From assembly GCA_965112735.1 (NCBI GenBank), contig OZ218951.1, positions 1,612,001 through 1,676,000 of the forward strand: a DNA stretch of 64,000 nucleotides, given 5' to 3'. Below the pieces are notes generated by a model, which did no database searches, was not told the origin of the DNA, and worked only from the letters and a program-made list of their open reading frames with translations. This DNA comes from Phaeosaccion multiseriatum. Its lineage: Eukaryota > Protista > Ochrophyta, other classes. Made by a program: the position numbers and the translations under genes. Positions 5,331-64,000 of this stretch are shown piece by piece; the first letter of the stretch is position 1, and the number at the start of each line of letters is the position of its first letter.

Positions 5331-6429
5331 TGCGTGTCTGTGGACACGGGTGAGTGTGTGGCGCAGAGGCGTAGATGGGAGGAGGGGGCGTGACTTCCAC
5401 CTTCTGAAAACCTCTTCGATCCTCCGTCCTCCCTCCACCCTTCCTTCCCTCGCCCTCCCTTCTCCCTCCTTCCCTCCCTCCCTCTCTCTGCTTCGTCGTT
5501 TTGTGGCGTGCAGTGCCATCGACACTACGGAGTTCTTGATTGCCTTCTTTCGCCTCTCCACAAACGCCAAGAAAGAGCACGCTCGCAGACTGAGAGGCGA
5601 CACCGATGGCGACGGCGGCCATGTCCACGCAACTAGCGTATCACCATCCAGTACGTTCGGGGGAAAGATTTCTTGGGGCAAGTCTCTCTCAGCCACTCGC
5701 AGAGAGCGGCAGCAGCAGCAGGAGGAGGAGGAGGAGCAAGAGGACGGCAGCAGCGGCCGCTCCCTCCTACCTCACAACGACGACGACCACTCAGTGTTCT
5801 CCTCAGTCTCGGCATTGGGCAGTAGCAGCAGTAGCACGTGCAGTCTGAGCCTCCCTCCCGGCGAGTGGAGCGAGACTGCCGCCCAAATGGCCGCTGAGTT
5901 CATGTCTACCCGTGTCGCCATCTGTGAAACTGCTGCTGGAGGAGTTGGTGATACATGCAATAGCCTACTTGGCCGTGGTGGAGAGTCGGAGGGGGGGGAG
6001 GAGGGCGAGGAGGGGGGGTTTGCGTCGTCAGATGACGAGGGTGGAGGGGAGGGGATTGTGCTTCCCCGTTTAGGAAAGGACCGGAGCTATACCAACGGAG
6101 GAGGAGGAGGAGGAGGAGGAGGAGGAGGAGGAGGAGGAGGAGGAGGAGGAGGAGGAGGAGGAGGAGGAGGAGGAGGAGGAGGAGGAGGAGGAGGAGGAGG
6201 AGGAGGAGGAGGAGGAGGAGGAGGAGGAGGAGGAGGAGATGCGGACTACGCGGACGAATACGAGTATGGCAACGAGGACGGAAATGAGAGCGACGAATGG
6301 GAGGAGGAGGGCGACGAGGGTGGGCTGCAGGAGAAGAAATCAGCAGCAGTTGGTGGTACAGCAGTAGGGGGGGCTGCGGCGGCTCCGACTTCGAAGGGCA
6401 AGAGCGGCGTCGCGGTGCGTCACCACGTG

Positions 6430-6503
<74 letters not shown>

Positions 6504-6524
6504 TAGACAGACAGACAGACAGAC

Positions 6525-6573
<49 letters not shown>

Positions 6574-6661
6574 GGGCGGGAGGGGGGGGGTTGCAGGGGA
6601 TGGAGGGGGGAGAAGGAGATTCCTTGACTCCTTTTGATCTGACTCGTGCCTGTCTGTCCTC

Positions 6662-6693
<32 letters not shown>

Positions 6694-8361
6694 TCCTCCT
6701 CCTCCTCCACCACCACCACAACCACCCCCCCCCCGCCCACGCTCAGGCTCTCCTGGAAGCCGGCAAGATAGAGGCAGGTCGTCTCAAGCGACAGCAAGAG
6801 GCAGCCTCTCGAAGCAACAGACCTGGCGGCGACGGCGACAACCAACACGAGGAGCTGCTGGGGAGGGTGGACGAGTACAAGAGACAGCGGGAGATGAGCG
6901 AGCAGGAGCAGGGGGGCGGCTCGCTCTGGGAGAAGAGCACAATTCGGCGTTCCAAGGGCTGCACGATTGTACGGGCAGTCACGCCGGCATTCGCCCATGG
7001 TGAGCTCCTCTCGCTCCTCCTCCTCCTCCTCCTCCCCCTCCTCCTCCTCCTCCTCCTCCTCCTCCTCCTCCTCCTCCTCCCCCTCCTCCTCCTCCTCCTC
7101 CTCCTCCTTGTACGGGCACGTCCGGCTGGCTCCTCCACGGGCTCTCTCTGTACTCACGAAATGACCCCCTCCTCCTCCTCCTCCTCCTCCTCCTCCCTCC
7201 CTGAACAGGCATGGATCGTTACCGCAAGGCCCAAACGCTGGCCTATCACGCCAAATGGCACGTGATTGCAGACTTCCTCTTGTCCGCACAGGGAGAGTCC
7301 TACCACGAGGTGGCGAGGCAGGTGCGTGCCAATATCGACATCGATATCGATGTTCGATAGCTCTCTAACAACTGAAACTCAGACTGAAGCTGAAACTGAA
7401 ACTGAAACCGACTGGAAACTGTACTGCAGGTGCTGGAGGTGTTCTATGAAGAAGCCGCACCCTCCTCGAGTGCACTCTTCTCCTCCTCCTCCACCATGGC
7501 AGCGACTATGCCGGTGGGCGGGGCGACGTCGAAGGCTGTGGGAGGAGGAGGAGGCGGCGGGAGGGGTGCTGACCATCTTCTCACCACGGGCCAGCAGAGA
7601 GGTGAGTAGCAAAGATCCGTGCAGGAGATAGAGGGGAGGGAGCGAGAGGTGGGGGGTCAACGGACAGCTGTGCCTTCTCTCTCTCTTCTCTCTCGCTTCT
7701 CTCCATCTCTCTCTCTCTCTCTCTTTCGCTTCCGCCCTCAGCCTTTGTAATCCCCCCCCTCCCCCACCCACCCTCCTCCTCCTCCTCCTTCTCCTTGTGC
7801 TCCTCCTCCTGCTGCTACTGCTCCTACTACTGCTTCCTTGTCCTTCCTTTCTTCGCGTGTCCGCAGCGCTAGGCAGGGATGCTTTTGTCTCCATTCTCGC
7901 CTCAGGGTTCCAGGGAGTCACTGAGAACAGTGCGCAGAAGGTGTACTCTTGCTTCGATCCCAAGGCCAGCGACAGGTCAATAGGCAATAGGCAAACGGGT
8001 ATTCTATGGCATGGCATGTCCAGGGGCATACGGATGTGGCCGGAGTGACTCGCAGATCCTGCTTTCTAGCTTCACCTGGCTTTGCACCTCACCCCACCCC
8101 ATCCACTGCCATCCCATCCCATGCCATCCACTACCATCCCCAGTGCGGACTTCCTCGAGTTGGCCGTGTGCGTGGAGATGCTTGGGGTGTACGCCGAGCG
8201 CGTGCATGGGAAGAGCACAGGGATGAAGCAACAGGACCACCAGGCCAGGAGGTGCGTCACTCAGTCATTGCCTTATTGCCTTGCATTGTTTGTTCTGGGC
8301 TTGATCTTTGTTTTGCCCTACCTGTTGTTAACGGGAGCGAGAAGCCATGTGTTGCTTGCTA

Positions 8362-14749: not shown

Positions 14750-15418
14750 CGCTTGCTGGACTCCAGAACCAGGCATCCCCACACTCTACCTTTCTGGCGG
14801 ACCCGACCAAGTCGTTACGTACTGCGAGGTCACCACTGCAGTACGTAACAACTTGGTCACGTCCGCCAGAAAGGTAGAGTGTGGGGATGCCTGGTTCTGG
14901 AGGTGTCCTCACACTCTACCTTTCTGGCGGACCCGACCAAGTCGTTACTTACTGCGAGGTCACCACTGCAGTACGTAACAACTTGGTCGGGTCCGCCAGA
15001 AAGGTAGAGTGTGGGGATGCCTGGTTCTGGAGGTGTCCTCACACTCTACCTTTCTAGCGGACCTGACCAAATCGTGTGTGGGGATGCCTGGTTCTGGAGG
15101 TGTCCTCACACACCACCCCAGTACGTAACGACTTGGTCGGGTCCGCCAGAAAGGTAGAGTGTGGGAATGCCTGGTTCTGGAGGTGTCCTCACACTCTACC
15201 TTTCTGGTGGACCTGATCAAGTCAGAACCAGGCATCCCCACACTCTACCTTTCTGGCGGACCCGACCAAGTCGTTACGTACTGCGAGGTCACCAATCGTC
15301 GCTCCTCTTGCTGCATGGACCGCATCACCGGCGTCAGCTTCAAGATCCTCGAACCGGACGGCACTACTGAGCTCTACTCCAGCACCTTCCCCTCATCCAC
15401 ACAAGACTCATACTTTCG
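14750..15418 (+). pseudogene. F-type lectin (fucolectin / F5-8 type C)-like exon fragment interrupted by a fold-back repeat array
   Basis: Removing the 459-nt insert gives ACWTPEPGIPTLYLSGGPDQVVTYCEVTNRRSSCCMDRITGVSFKILEPDGTTELYSSTF, which resembles the V-x-NR-x(1-3)-CC-x2-R motif; ends at donor CG|gtacgt; no clear start. Confidence 0.5.
14761..15294. repeat. Array of alternating direct and inverted copies of a 65-75-bp unit (nested hairpins; 130-bp higher-order period)
   Basis: Forward copies 14761-14835, 14910-14965, 15040-15075, 15190-15223, 15223-15294; inverted copies 14838-14902, 14968-15032, 15076-15099, 15120-15182. Confidence 0.95.
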
Positions 15419-56853: not shown

Positions 56854-59755
56854 CTAGAACTGAGCGGAGAAGACGGGGTTGTGCCGTGCGATTCTCGGCC
56901 CCTCCTCGTCATACTGAGCCTTCGTACAGCACACGTTGGGGAAGTCCGGAGTGCTCGCGATGAGGGACCCGCCGAACCACACCGCGTACCTTGAGCGGGG
57001 AGGGGGGGGGCAGAGAGAGAGAGAGAGTGAGAGAGAGAGAGAGAGAGGAGGAGGAGGAGACAATAGTCAGGCAAACACACACACACACACAAAGAGAGAG
57101 GTAAGCAAACAGTCTTTCGCCTGAGGAGAATGGGACAACAGCACCCGAGTGTGCATCAAACGTCCTTCGCCTCCCTTCCCCGTCCCCTCCCATCCTCACT
57201 CCCCGTCGCCTCGCGAACCATGTGGGTGCGTGTCCCATACACTTACCTCTGCATGGCGTGTGAGATGACGTTGACGTCGATGGGGGCAGCCTTGACCCTG
57301 TTGGTGATGCTTAGACCCTTCATCTTCTCCATCAGGCTCTTGTTGAGCTCCATGCGTGTGTCCACATGCCGCTTAATGTCCCTCTCCAAGCGCCGTCCAA
57401 AGTCCTTGAACATCGTGGAGCCGCCGGACAGGACAATGTTCTGCGGAGGCGTGTGTGTGTTTGTGTGTGCGTGTGTGTGCGTGTGTGTGCATGTGTGTGC
57501 GTGTGCGCATGTGTGCGCACGCGTGTGTGTGTGTGTGGGGGGGGGGGGGATACGTCTGAGCTGAAGTGTCGTCCTTGCAGCCGACAGCCATTCTTGTCCC
57601 TCCTGCCTCCCCATGTCCAGAGCTCTCCTTCTCTGCAAACGTGCCCTGACCCTCTCTCTCCTCCCCCCTTCTCCCTCCCTCTCTGTCCGCCCCCTCCTGG
57701 TAGAGAGTGGCGTGTCATGTGGGGTACTGTCCTCCCTACCTCCCTCACAACCCTACTCCTCTCAACCCCCTCACTACTATCCTGTTCCGTCACCCCCATC
57801 CCCTCTCACTACCCTCACCTTGTAAAGCCCCCTTCGGCTGTCGATGGGACAGGCCATGATGGCCTCATCCACCACTTGCGGCAGAGGCACGGTAAAGTCG
57901 CTGCTGAAGATGTCGGGATTGAAGAACACCTCGGGTCCGAGGAAGCGCTCGTAGCCCACGTCAGCGGTGTACTCCTGCACAGAAAGGGCACAGCACATAG
58001 TCCAGGATTTGGTGATACAGCACAGCACGGCACAGCAAAGCATCCACAATGCCCCTCCTTCTTCCCTCCCTCCCTCCCTCCCGCCCGCCCTCCCCCCCTC
58101 CTTATCCCCACCAACCCCACCCACCTGTCCGCCCTTCTACCCATGCACCTTCATCCTGCCCATACACCTCTACCCTGCCGATACACCTCTACCCTGCCGA
58201 TACACCTCTACCCCCGTCCTCAATCCCCCCACGACTCCCACCTACCTGTCCGCCCTTCTTGGTCCCCCTGTACATTCTGAAGTACTTGGCAGGGTCCTTA
58301 TCGAACTTGACGTACTCCTTGGCGATGTCCGAACACACGTAACAATTCTGCTCCTTGATGCGGCGGGCGGCGTCCAGCAAGTCCTCGGGCGGGATGGACT
58401 GGGGAGGGAGAGGTGGGGGAGGAGGGGGGGGGGTGGAGGTGTATGGGCAGGGTATAGGTGTATGGGCAGGGCAGAGGTGAAAGGGCAGGATAGAGGTGTA
58501 TGGGCAGGGTAGAGGTGTATGGGCCGGGAAGAGGTGTATGGGCAGGGCAGGGCAGGTGGGATGGGGTGAAGTGATGTGACCATGGCAGAGGTGTATGGGC
58601 AGGGAAGAGTGGAGGTGTATGGGCAGGGCAGGGCAGGGCAGGGCAGTGCAGGGCAGGTGGGATGGGGTGAAGTGACCATGGCAGAGGTGTATGGGCAGGG
58701 CAGGGCAGGGCAGAGATATATGCGCAGGGTAGAGGTGTGTGGACAGGGTAGAGGTGTATGGGCAGGGAAGAGTGGAGGTGTATGGGCAGGGCAGTGCAGT
58801 GCAGTGCAGTGCAGGGCAGGTGGGATGGGGTGAAGTGAAGTGACCATGGCAGAGGTGTATGCGCAGGGTAGATGTGTATGGGCAGGGAAGAGTGGAGGTG
58901 TATGGGCAGGGCAGGGCAGAGACGTATGCGCAAGGTAGGGCAGGGCCGGGGAAAAAAGGAGACGGGGTGGGGTAAAGTACAGTGACCACGGTAGAGATAA
59001 GCCCGTTGCTTCGATTCAAGGGCGGGGAAGAAACCCACATCTCTCGCTTGGAGAGAGGCAAGAGAGGCACAAAGAGAGAGGGGGGTGGCCGCACACCGAT
59101 CATAACCGATGAGGGATGAGAGCAGCCCGACGGACACACCTATAGTGCTGCCTTTGCGCTGCCATCCCTTCCTCCCTCCCTCCCTCCCTCCCTCCCTCCC
59201 TCCCCTCCTCTCTCCCCTCCCTACGCCCCTTCCGCCCCCCCCATCGCCTCCCTCCACCCCTCCCCTCCCTCCCTCCCGTGCTCACCTCTTTCCTCTCCCT
59301 GAGAAGATTCATGATAAACTGCGTAATGTCCCTTCCCGCCAGCGGAATGTGCTTGATGCAGGAGCCAATGACGTATCCCTCCGCCACGGGAATGACGTGT
59401 GTCACTCCATCCCCGGAGTCGATGACCGTCCCCGTCAATGTCCGTTCTGACACCTGGTATCGGTTATTGTATTCAAGTCAACACGTCAGGAGGGAGGAGA
59501 GGAGGCATGGATTGGGCTTGACTTTCGGCATTCTTGCGGCTGATGCTGCTCTCTCTCTATTACACATACGCCTCCGCCCTCGAGATACTACCGACTCTCT
59601 CGATCTCTCTGAATGCCCTCGAGATACTACTGACTCTCTCGATCTCTCTCTACGTCCTCGCTACTACTGTACAGCGGCACTGCCCAGCCTACTATCCACC
59701 ACGCCACATACGAGGCAACGACTCCAGTACTACGCCTAACCTTGACACTCCTCCT

Positions 59756-59803
<48 letters not shown>

Positions 59804-60880
59804 CTCCTCCTCCTCCTCCTCCTCCTCCTCTCCTCGTCCTCCTCCTCGTCCTCGTCCTCCTCCTCGTCCTCGTCCTCGTCCTCGTCCTCCTCCTCCTCCT
59901 CCTCCTCCTCCTCCTCCTCCTCCTCCTCCTCCTCCTTTCCTCTCCCCCTCCATCCTCCTCACCTTCTTGGAGCTCCACGACGCCGCCAGAGCCATGACGG
60001 CTTGCACAGCAATGTACAAACCAGGCACATTGAAGGTCTCAAACATGATCTCAGCGGTGTACTCTCGGTTCTCGGGGGTATTGAGGGGCGGCTCTGTGAG
60101 CATGACGAAATGCTCCTCAGGCTCACACTTGAGGTACTTGAAGAGGCACTGCTGCCATAACCTATTGTATACAGATGTATAACATTACATGGCACAAAAG
60201 CAGCATTAGGGGTGTTGAGCTGGCGTGGGGATGTTGGTCTGGATTTGTGGTTGTTGTTGGAGAGTGTGGTGAAGTGCATGATGCCTGTGTATATGGTAGA
60301 GCGCCCCTACTCCTCAGCTGCTACCAGGGAGGAGAAGTTTCGGGGACGAGTCCTGTGTCTCAGATATGATGTCATATCAATGGGCAGTGGATACGGTCTA
60401 TCTCGGGAAGGAGAGGGGGTGAGAATGCTCGACACGGAGGAGAGGGGAGTGCGGTGAGCGCCACACCATGTAGAGCAGCCGCCCCCACTCCTCAGGAGAG
60501 GGGGGGTGAGAGAGACCCACAGGGAGGAAAGCATTCGCCCCATTCCACTCCACTCCAAACAGGCAGCAATAGACATTGCAAGCAACATCGCTCCCCCCCT
60601 CATCATCCTCTCACCTCTCCATGTTGTCCCAGTCCTCGATGAGGCCGTGCCTGATGGGGTAGGAAACTTGGTGTGTAGTGGCGTGCTGCAGCGCCTCCTG
60701 TCCGATGAAGAAGTCCAGGTCCTCCACGCCGTCCCGTTTTCCCTCCATGCCCCCCTGTGCTGCCTTGTGCGCCGTGGCGGTGGGAACAATGTATTGCGGC
60801 TCAACATTGCCGGCGTAGCCCATCTTGGTATAGCCGGTGCCATTGTCAATGACAACGGCCGGACGGGAGTAGTCGCCCAT
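56854..60880 (-). CDS. ARP3: Actin-related protein 3 (Arp2/3 complex), multi-exon
   Basis: [107 protein letters not shown]. Confidence 0.97.
58436..58945. repeat. Intronic satellite built from GGTGTATGGGCAGGG / GCAGG units
   Basis: Directly visible repeated units in an ARP3 intron. Confidence 0.9.
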
Positions 60881-61174
60881 CCCTCCCAGTGCGCCGCTCC
60901 CCCCCTCGGTGCTGCTGCTACCCCACCGGTGTACCGGTGTAGCCGAGACGATCAAGGGAAGACGAAGAAGATTAAGAAGATGGGCGGACAAGTTGAGCAA
61001 ACGAGGCAAATCTGGTGCGATTAGATGAGGCTAAGTGCTCTGCTTCTCCAAGCAGCAAGCAGCAGCAGCAGCAGTCTGGCACGATGGGGTTTTCTTGTTT
61101 CAAAGAAGGGGTTCTCTCTCTCTCCTCCCTCTCTCAAGGTTGACACCAGGTACTTTACTATTGGACAGAGTGCA

Positions 61175-61777
61175 TCTCCTCCTCCTCCTCCTCAATGTCG
61201 ACATTGCTGCGGGGGGGCGGGCGCTCTGCCTCATCGGGCGCGAATCGGTTTATCAGCTCCAGCATCCAGCCAGGGAGGGGCCTGTCGCGGAAGAGATTGC
61301 CATTCTCGCTGTGGAGGCCTTCGAGGCAGTGCACGGCACGCGGGACTCAGATCACCGTGTGGGTTGCCAGCAGTTGATGGCGGTCTCTGGGGCCGTAGAG
61401 TATGCCAGATCAGCGGGATACCAGGGGGATGAGCTGAAGAACCTTCTGCTGGACGCTGCAGTAACCGCTGGTTTCATGGTTTCATGGTTACTGCAGCGTC
61501 CAGCAGAAGGTTCTTCAGCTCATCCCCCTGGTATCCCGCTGATCTGGCATACTCTACGGCCCCAGAGACCGCCATCAACTGCTGGCAACCCACACGGTGA
61601 TCTGAGTCCCGCGTGCCGTGCACTGCCTCGAAGGCCTCCACAGCGAGAATGGCAATCTCTTCCGCGACAGGCCCCTCCCTGGCTGGATGCTGGAGCTGAT
61701 AAACCGATTCGCGCCCGATGAGGCAGAGCGCCCGCCCCCCCGCAGCAATGTCGACATGGAGGAGGAGGAGGAGGAGG
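61175..61777. repeat. Long inverted repeat, arms about 290 bp (61175-61466 / 61486-61777), 19-nt spacer
   Basis: Right arm is the reverse complement of the left with a single mismatch seen (caatgtcgac vs gtcgacatgg). Confidence 0.97.
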
Positions 61778-64000
61778 AGGAGAAGGAGCTCAAGGCGGAA
61801 ATGGCCATTCTGAAGGAGCTCGAGGCGCAGGTTGCTGCCAAGATCGACACTGACTACACGGAACCGGAGGAGCTGATTGACGGATTCAATGACCCCACCA
61901 GCTCACCGGAGGAGCGGGAAGAGAGCAAGGAGAAGAGCCAAGCCGCTTGTCAGGCCTGGTGCAAAGTTCTCCAGAGTGAGGTGCGGGCCAAGGGGGTGGA
62001 TCCACAGAAGAGCACGATGGGCTTCCTCTGGCACCAGCTGGACTTTACTGTATGCTTTCCGTGGCTCACGAGTAAACAGTTGGCGGACTTTACTTGGAAC
62101 GCCAACTGTTTACTCGTGAGCCACGGAAAGTATACAGTAAAGTCCAGCTGGTGCCAGAGGAAGCCCATCGTGCTCTTCTGTGGATTATGCGTGCGCCAGA
62201 AAACATGATTGATGGTGTTCGTGGCGACGACAGGCTCAAGGCCATCCAAACCGTGTTTGAGACCTCAGCCTTGTTCGTGGACCAGCAACTTCGCGGCAGG
62301 GGCAAGACGCTGGATGACCGCGCCACCTTCCATGCGCTTCTGGTGTGCGCTGCTCAGCGGCAGGACAGGAGGACTACGGAAACTCTCCTGCAGAATCTTC
62401 CCTTCTGGGATGCGGCACAGGTTCTGAGGCCGGAGGCGTTTCGCGGCCTTTCGCTGTTCAATGAGTTCTCAGTCGGGGGGGGGCTATGGCGAAAAGAGGA
62501 AGCCTGGTGGTTTCCGCAAGTCGCGTGGTGTAAATGTCAGTGAGCCCATCCGAGTGGAGTCGCTCCTGGTAAAGTATCCGGCGAGCTTTCGGGACGCGCT
62601 GGGTGCCCGGCTCCAAGGTCTGGGCCGAAAGCCCTACAGGAGTCTACAGGATGTGCGCGAGGCCGCCACAGGGGCTTGCCGCCTGGACGTCATCACCTAC
62701 GACGAGCTCCAGCACATAGAGTGGCTCTGCCGCAGAGTGGAGAGTCGCTTCGAGCAGATTTGTCTAGCCGGGGGTGACGAGGAGGAGGATTGGGGTGATG
62801 AGCCGGGCCGTGACGCCCAGCCTGGGGGAAGGGGACGCGAGACGGACTCTTACAAGAAGTATCGCATCTTTATGGAGATTCTTCACGACGTGAGTACTCG
62901 AGCGTGTGCGTTGCGTGTGTATGTGTTGGAGTGTGTGTAGCTGTGGCTGTTTGTGTGTGTGTGTACCATGTCCCTCCCGCTGTACAGCAGCTAACGAGCT
63001 GGACCCTACCCGTCTTCCTTCCCAAACTCCAGAACTTCTTGCTTCACCTGTCCAGAATCTACAAGCGGGCCACTTCTCTGAGCAGCTCGTTTCTGCTGTC
63101 GATGGTGCTCGAGGCCAGAGTAGGCAAGGTGTTCCCAGCAGCGGACCCTCGCCGCGCATCGCCCCTTCACTTGGGCAGCACAAGGGAACTCCGCCGCGAG
63201 CTCCTCTCCCTCATGAGCCTTCTCGGTTCAGACGGCTGCATCAGACCCCACCAGGCTGAGCTGGGATTGAAGGCGCGAAAGAGCGAGCGTAGGGTCATGC
63301 GCATCATGCGAGACGTTCTCCGTATCGTCGGAGGCAAGAAGGGCGGCACAATTTACAGGCGCTACAGCGGCACCAGCATACACGGCAAAGCGCTCTTCTG
63401 CTACGTCGTCTACCTACGCCACCCCCACGTGAGTACATGGCTGGCCCGCTCGCCGCTGCCCTCGCCCCTCCCCCCCCCCCTCATGCCGCTCTCCCTCTCC
63501 ACCCACCCACTGTGCAGCTGTGGGCCATCCTCGGCATCCTCGCTGGCAACGGTTCCAGCAAGGTCTCCGACCGGTTCAGTCACGCCCGGAGGATGCTCTT
63601 CTGCTACACCATGTCCGACGCCCCGACTCTCAAGGATGAGGAGGCAGCGCAAACGGACTTTGCCAAATCCGCCGTTACTTTCTTCTCCGGCATGATCGAT
63701 GGTATGTGGTAGAACAACACAACCAGGGAAAGACACCAAGCGCTTGGCTCCTCCGGTCGATAATAAACTCGCTGACAGCCTTGCTCCTCCTCGCCCCCCC
63801 CCCCACCACCAATGTCTGTGTGCGTGAACCACAGGAGACGGTCACAACGGCAGTCTCAAGAAGCGCAAGCGCAAGGGCAAGAAGGGCAAGAAGGGCAAGG
63901 GCAAGAGCAAGGGCAAGGGCAAGCGCGGGAGGAGGCAGATTGGTCGACGGCGGGCCATTCTGGCGCTCTTCTCCACCAATCGGGGTGAGCTCGACTTCTG
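61377..64000 (+). CDS. Intron-containing gene (disrupted as assembled; 3' end outside the window) encoding a helical N-terminal region and a double-motif LAGLIDADG endonuclease-like domain
   Basis: Introns 62890-62987, 63429-63517 and 63702-63834 are phase-consistent; product contains LMSLLGSDGCI and FFSGMIDG|DGH followed by AILALFSTNRGELDF; frame broken by two inverted insertions and a G9 run; start uncertain. Confidence 0.7.
62000..62185. repeat. Inverted repeat, 86-bp arms (62000-62085 / 62100-62185), 14-nt loop
   Basis: Perfect complementarity except G62054/T62131. Confidence 0.97.

Follow-up and report, generated by a model that had tools for sequence, protein, structure and literature searches.

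An inverted duplication near the right end of the window, here called fold-back 1, is probably the scar of a microhomology-mediated template switch or fold-back repair event, of a kind already known, and not a feature of a gene. The window is the whole 64,000-nt stretch analysed, C2:1,612,001-1,676,000 of a 67.1-Mb, 22-contig assembly, and consists of intron-containing eukaryotic DNA of about 58% G+C. Fold-back 1 lies in a damaged gene copy that has its best relative on contig C12 (the C12 paralogue), and each of its arms also carries a fragment of an unrelated gene family, F. Two smaller fold-backs follow in the same gene copy. The features are collected in Table 1.

Table 1. Features of the fold-back region. 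Positions are those of the window; fold-back 3 lies just past its end and is given in the same numbering.
Feature	Position	Strand	Description
First coding exon of neighbouring actin-family (actin-related protein) gene	60611-61009	-	Pfam Actin, E = 5e-17
Fold-back 1, left arm	61176-61466		291 nt; presumed newly made inverted copy
P', inverted copy of the 103-nt exon 1 stub of the C12-like gene	61176-61278	-	94% identity to C12:1296954-1297056
Filler GG between gene stub and F fragment	61279-61280		counterpart CC at 61672-61673; no match to C12 or to the F family
Q, 199-nt fragment of F-family coding sequence, sense orientation	61281-61479	+	96% identity to C7:3656181-3656377
Fold-back 1, loop	61467-61485		19 nt, GCTGGTTTCATGGTTTCAT; first 13 nt still F sequence
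Fold-back 1, right arm	61486-61776	+	291 nt; presumed original; antisense F fragment, CC and gene stub, unbroken into the rest of the gene copy
Exon 1 remnant of dead copy	61674-62085	+	C12 homology begins abruptly mid-exon at 61674 (alignment)
Fold-back 2	62000-62085 / 62100-62185		86-nt arms, 1 mismatch, 14-nt loop
Exon 2 remnant of dead copy	62184-62943	+	extra G in run 62475-62483
Fold-back 3	64176-64307 / 64315-64446		132-nt arms, 1 mismatch, 7-nt loop

The arms of fold-back 1 are complementary at 290 of 291 positions by both a repeat search and a k-mer scan, the sole mismatch being 61194 (A) against 61758 (G). One arm repeats the sequence right beside it in inverted form, across a short spacer, as expected of a fold-back scar. 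An 8-nt sequence, TTTCATGG, is repeated in tandem in the loop region (61472-61479 and 61480-61487), and the last GG of this tandem is able to pair with CC at 61465-61466. A preliminary description had proposed that the inverted duplication was templated, with a short slip where it turns around, and the length of the arms, their single mismatch and the TTTCATGG tandem bear this out. The (GAG)n/(CTC)n tract that it placed at the outer edge is present, as are ATG 61476 and ATG 61756, which are 280 nt apart and in different frames. When the RNA of positions 61160-61790 was folded, it formed one unbroken stem of -695.8 kcal/mol, compared with -265 +/- 11 kcal/mol for dinucleotide shuffles (z = -39), so chance is excluded as the source of the stem. 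A transcript crossing fold-back 1 is accordingly predicted to form the stem of about 290 bp that had been foreseen, long and near perfect, as in a hairpin-RNA gene.

The host gene copy is colinear with C12:1297056-1296597 over 61674-62085, and from 62183 to about 66800 it matches C12:1296413 downwards, at 85-95% identity across these stretches; the first 2 kb of the latter are at 93-95%, and the part beyond falls to about 80%. The C12 paralogue has long open exons and a canonical GT..AG intron, and looks intact. Its ORF extends for about 140 codons upstream of the point equivalent to 61674, and no trace of this missing 5′ part was found in the 7 kb upstream of 61674 in the window. In exon 2, the run at 62475-62483 is G9 in the window and G8 in C12, a +1 frameshift that, being in a homopolymer, could alternatively be a sequencing error. 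The dN/dS ratio between the two copies is 0.50 for the exon 1 remnant, 1.29 for exon 2 and about 0.9 pooled, values indicating that the window copy has evolved roughly neutrally. The window copy is a dead gene, because it is cut in mid-exon, has lost the end of exon 1 together with the intron, carries the G9 frameshift and has a pooled dN/dS of about 0.9.

The interrupted gene had been described as a LAGLIDADG gene. Searched exon by exon, neither the window copy nor the C12 paralogue matched a Pfam domain of any kind, and no LAGLIDADG family was reached at E <= 1 with the window ORFs or at E <= 0.1 with the C12 exons. The identification as a LAGLIDADG homing endonuclease gene is rejected for want of a domain detectable by Pfam profile.

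On its other side, the left arm of fold-back 1 abuts the upstream region of the actin-family gene. The Actin-matching ORFs of this neighbour occupy 59627-60103 and 60611-61009, both on the minus strand. Between the two, at 59740-60000, are long tracts of trinucleotide and simple repeats that read as poly-Ser, poly-Gly or poly-Glu depending on the frame.

Both arms are chimeric. Each is made up of 103 nt of the C12-like gene and 186 nt of Q, the last 13 nt of Q being in the loop; the inverted gene stub P' includes (CTC)6 at 61176-61193. A DNA search of the genome showed F to be an unrelated family of four copies, with full copies on C7, C5 and C1 (two), plus the window fragment. Q is about 75% identical to the copies on C5 and C1 (two), far below its match to the C7 copy. 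The three-part junction of P', filler and Q was found nowhere else when the 67-Mb assembly was searched. The F-family ORFs are of 274-686 codons and have no Pfam domains, and the full copies stay in frame on both sides of the Q segment, unlike the window. Very long F ORFs, again lacking Pfam domains, are present at L025:4605-9142 (C7) and L026:3438-7912 (C5). The F copies are themselves mosaic: those on C7 and C5 are identical base for base just left of the Q segment and about 75% identical within it.

The chimeric arms alter the reading of the coding frames. The preliminary description had followed a sense frame ending in ...LLLDAAVTAGFM (also ...ELKNLLLDAAVTAGFM) and taken it to resume as a stretch of 16 residues at ATG 61756, so that the insert would frameshift the gene. 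The first of these is the coding frame of the F family, while the 16 residues are in the frame of the C12-like gene; the frames come from two different sources, and one continuous ORF never existed across fold-back 1. It had also been suggested that excision from GT(61479) to AG(61761) restores the frame. Arithmetically the two frames are indeed joined, but the product merely fuses two unrelated fragments. A spliceosomal intron between these sites was rejected, as it does not restore a frame supported by homologues and the combination of an F frame with a C12-like frame occurs in no paralogue. A foldback transposon or MITE was also considered; the genome search returned just the two arms, besides the C12 gene and the F family, which match in part, and since no unit with inverted termini is repeated elsewhere in the genome, this reading was rejected.

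The direction of synthesis of fold-back 1 can be deduced from how far each colinearity extends. Colinearity with F runs through the left arm and 13 nt of the loop, to 61479, while on the right arm it ends at the arm's edge. Colinearity with C12 passes from the right arm straight into the right flank, unbroken. For these reasons the left arm would be the new inverted copy and the right arm the original. At the single mismatched pair (61194/61758), C12 has the right-arm state and the left arm carries the derived base. Synthesis from the right-hand end was rejected, since the loop would then be the reverse complement of the one observed. The anatomy of fold-back 1, its chimeric arms, its absence from the paralogue and its polarity are all evident in the assembled sequence.

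A history in two steps, capture of F and then fold-back, is favoured by parsimony. The window holds a partial, decaying duplicate of a putative orphan gene with an intact-looking copy on C12. At an earlier stage, exon 1 of the duplicate would have been cut at 61674 and joined via two filler bases to an antisense F fragment, which would then have reached at least 13 nt further left than it does now. As the nearest F copy (C7) is just 96% identical, the donor of this fragment may be lost, unassembled or diverged. Later, a break or a stalled fork would have deleted the stretch between the upstream region of the actin-family gene, which ends at 61175, and the F fragment. The free 3′ end at 61175 may have annealed, in inverted orientation, to the (GAG)n run in the gene stub and primed synthesis there, after which about 304 nt would have been copied backwards, taking in stub, filler and F fragment, and one slip would have duplicated TTTCATGG. 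A turn guided by microhomology between GG (61486-61487) and CC (61465-61466) would have allowed the original sequence to be rejoined at 61486; the left arm would then be a new inverted copy, separated by the 19-nt loop from the original right arm. For the enzymology, we infer either replication template switching (FoSTeS/MMBIR-like) or microhomology-primed break repair. The preliminary description had named polymerase theta as a candidate enzyme. Three family-A polymerase loci are present in the genome; of the ORFs compared in looking for an orthologue of that enzyme, one has no PDB match, and another weakly matches bacterial Pol I only.

Fold-back 2 starts 224 nt downstream of fold-back 1 and takes the place of about 175 nt of C12-type sequence, namely the final 36 nt of exon 1 together with the entire GT..AG intron. 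In their place are 14 nt and 86 nt of the exon sequence just before, copied in inverted orientation. The right arm opens with TTCCAA in reverse complement; these are the six bases that follow the left arm in C12 and are otherwise deleted from the window. An 8-nt filler, GACTTTAC, was copied from 62041-62048, 40 nt upstream, and the return into exon 2 shows an AT overlap. At the single mismatch, the inverted arm has the ancestral A, as in C12, and the other arm a derived G (62054); because the inverted arm keeps the ancestral base, the mismatch is a later substitution and not a copying error.

At fold-back 3 there is also a tandem duplication of 121 nt, so that three copies are present, arranged direct-direct-inverted; the inverted one carries 6 additional ancestral bases, and there is an 8-nt filler as well. 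The C12 paralogue can be aligned colinearly through each of the three sites and lacks a fold-back at every one of them, and no fold-back was found in 20 kb of the closest C12 copy. The fold-backs are thus absent from the un-rearranged reference state, as expected of scars, the reference being the C12 paralogue, which is 5-7% diverged and is not an orthologue.

These two structures bear on the mechanism. The preliminary description had favoured a simple snap-back of one strand on itself, an idea that does not agree with the chimeric arm of fold-back 1 or with the six bases kept in one arm of fold-back 2 and lost from the other. Self snap-back of one resected end is rejected for fold-back 2, since the inverted arm holds six bases that the primer side had lost. 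The template was therefore not the primer's own strand, and the retained bases argue for a switch to the opposite strand, the other break end or a sister molecule over pure self snap-back. Microhomology and templated filler accompany both fold-back 1 (the GG/CC turn and TTTCATGG) and fold-back 2 (the 8-nt filler and the AT overlap). The six retained bases and the templated filler at fold-back 2 are recognisable marks of serial template switching, and all three fold-backs look like products of serial, microhomology-guided template switching. Fold-backs 2 and 3 would be the same kind of scar as fold-back 1, in the same dead copy.

Other inverted repeats occur in and near the window. At 14761-15283 there are five back-to-back fold-backs with arms of 31-65 nt, 0-4 mismatches and loops of 12-43 nt; the unit of this chain has relatives at 15 or more other places in the genome (78-87% identity), which suggests that the chain is the end of a repeated element. 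Short fold-backs with 51-, 37- and 83-nt arms lie at 66794-66965 and 71651-71894 (window numbering), near the end of the C12 homology. At 6097-7108, inverted repeats of about 100 nt lie about 800 nt apart in a 3-nt-periodic repeat, with many staggered alignments at 95-98%.

The arms of fold-backs 1, 2 and 3 have diverged by 0.3%, 1.2% and 0.8%, respectively, against 5-7% between the window and C12 gene copies and 4% between Q and its nearest F relative. On these figures the fold-backs seem far more recent than either the partial duplication or the capture of F, unless conversion between arms homogenises them. Gene conversion from arm to arm could make a palindrome seem younger than its true age. 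An older fold-back, C12:1322923-1323280, with 174-nt arms, 7 mismatches, a 10-nt loop and 4% arm divergence, occurs at another position in a more distant paralogue that is about 82% identical to the window copy. That the arms of this older fold-back have diverged so far argues against strong homogenisation. Since this fold-back has aged, and since the mismatch of fold-back 2 has the polarity of a later substitution, fold-backs of this class appear to be inherited, to persist and to decay.

These ages, and the details of the junctions, bear on the other ways in which fold-back 1 might be explained. The palindrome could be as old as the gene duplication, had one MMBIR-type event made the C2 copy, captured F and folded back, with conversion between the arms ever since. 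Fold-back 1 does lie exactly at the left boundary of the homology between C2 and C12, and the F fragment has diverged from C7 (4%) to a similar degree as the gene copy has from C12 (5-7%). However, the arms differ by only 0.3% where the copies differ by 5-7%, arms do drift apart in this genome, as in the older fold-back of the distant paralogue, and the F fragment need not be old, most of the differences between Q and C7 being derived on the C7 side. Such a common origin is highly improbable. It is very unlikely, too, that the palindrome is a fold-back chimera of amplification, library preparation or assembly that is absent from the organism. Strand-displacement chimeras do have near-identical arms and a very short loop like those seen here, but the loop of fold-back 1 is native, being made of 13 nt of F and an 8-nt local duplication that leave no space for an adapter, and a unique three-part junction lies within the arm. 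The fold-backs are accompanied by deletions, templated fillers and a foreign fragment, and the host copy is degenerate independently of them. The ancestral base kept in the inverted copy at fold-back 2 and the related fold-back elsewhere with 4% arm divergence also speak against an artefact, and a 22-contig, 67-Mb consensus is unlikely to have fixed several single-molecule chimeras within 3 kb.

A different proposal grants that the structure is genuine and gives it a function. Hairpin-RNA genes and young miRNA genes of plants are born by inverted duplication of their target genes, and fold-back 1 resembles them in being a long, near-perfect inverted gene duplication with extended complementarity to paralogues. 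As a newborn hairpin-RNA (endo-siRNA) gene, it would be transcribed from the divergent promoter region of the actin-family gene into about 290 bp of dsRNA, yielding siRNAs that silence the C12 gene and the F family. The hairpin begins about 170-300 nt upstream of the neighbouring gene's first coding exon, and its stem is near perfect and extremely stable in the predicted fold. Both RNAi machinery and complementary targets were found, in that the genome gives domain hits to Piwi/Argonaute, RdRP and RNase III, and perfect matches were found for 28 of the arm's 21-mers in the C12 gene and for 70 in the C7 copy of F. On the other hand, the two further fold-backs in the same dead copy are a better fit to neutral debris than to selected genes, and the older fold-back of the distant paralogue is decaying (7 mismatches), with no sign that its stem is maintained. 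Hairpin-RNA and miRNA loci are defined by transcription, dicing and target repression. The proposal is unlikely, but were it true, new silencing loci would arise regularly from this genome's dead gene copies.

For a repair or template-switch scar, precedents are at hand, since errors of replication and repair are documented to produce structures of similar size and shape (PMC11724301, PMC13334657, PMC7954356, PMC10622511). Break repair in yeast produces local fold-back insertions as well as inverted pairs from distant loci, using 2-11-nt microhomology (Yu et al. 2024, PMC11724301), and these inverted insertions are enhanced when RPA or Rad27/FEN1 is limiting (PMC11724301). As in the window, the yeast insertions are inverted copies joined by microhomology of 2-11 nt, the inverted parts lying 2-120 nt apart, and pieces from distant loci arrive as inverted pairs; the model proposed is microhomology-primed synthesis plus end joining (PMC11724301). 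They differ in size, local fold-backs in yeast being mostly 5-34 bp and distant inverted pairs having medians of 50-150 bp, compared with 291 nt for the arm of fold-back 1, which unlike the yeast cases also combines a local and a foreign piece (PMC11724301). Fold-back 1 is moreover fixed in a genome, whereas the yeast cases were seen in an amplicon assay (PMC11724301).

In small inverted triplications, which are ascribed to errors of Okazaki-fragment processing, the unit is about 150 bp long and the spacer about 30 bp (Lei et al. 2026, PMC13334657). Their size class and template-switch origin are like those of the fold-backs, their junctions being of about 6 bp, and they too are unstable hairpins that co-occur with other rearrangements at the same locus (PMC13334657). 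The direct-inverted-direct order was sought in all three fold-backs; unlike the triplications (PMC13334657), fold-backs 1 and 2 are two-copy structures with deletions, and fold-back 3 has three copies in the order direct-direct-inverted. A small inverted triplication (DUP/INV/DUP) is therefore rejected, as copy number and order do not fit.

Template switches over a short range offer a further comparison. Those described by Walker, Loytynoja and colleagues reportedly involve tens of bases, as a rule, with sequence replaced in place, whereas the fold-backs here copy 86-304 nt and delete 175 nt or more. Ape genomes are known to contain such short template-switch mutations (Walker, Loytynoja and colleagues 2021, PMC7954356), and the likeness is that a nascent strand copies the nearby opposite strand and returns, creating or perfecting a hairpin (PMC7954356). 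Break-induced fold-back inversions are also known in yeast (PMC10622511). Fold-back 1 belongs with these known processes, although it is longer than typical local fold-backs and unusual in its combined local and foreign arm.

Taken alone, fold-back 1 is one more replication or repair scar of a known class, in an already dead gene copy. Inverted duplications of 100-300 bp have so far been described mainly in yeast mutants and tumours; should similar scars recur elsewhere in this genome, the organism would offer a good natural setting for studying them. The present example is valuable as a clean case whose history can be traced: the state before three fold-backs within 3 kb can be read from a close paralogue, the foreign fragment in the arm fixes the direction of synthesis, and a fourth, older fold-back shows how such structures persist and decay. 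It may also be that a palindrome in a dead copy is fragile and prompts further fold-backs, in which case their occurrence in clusters would be explained. If such scars do recur in this genome, they could also show whether any of them turn into silencing-RNA genes.
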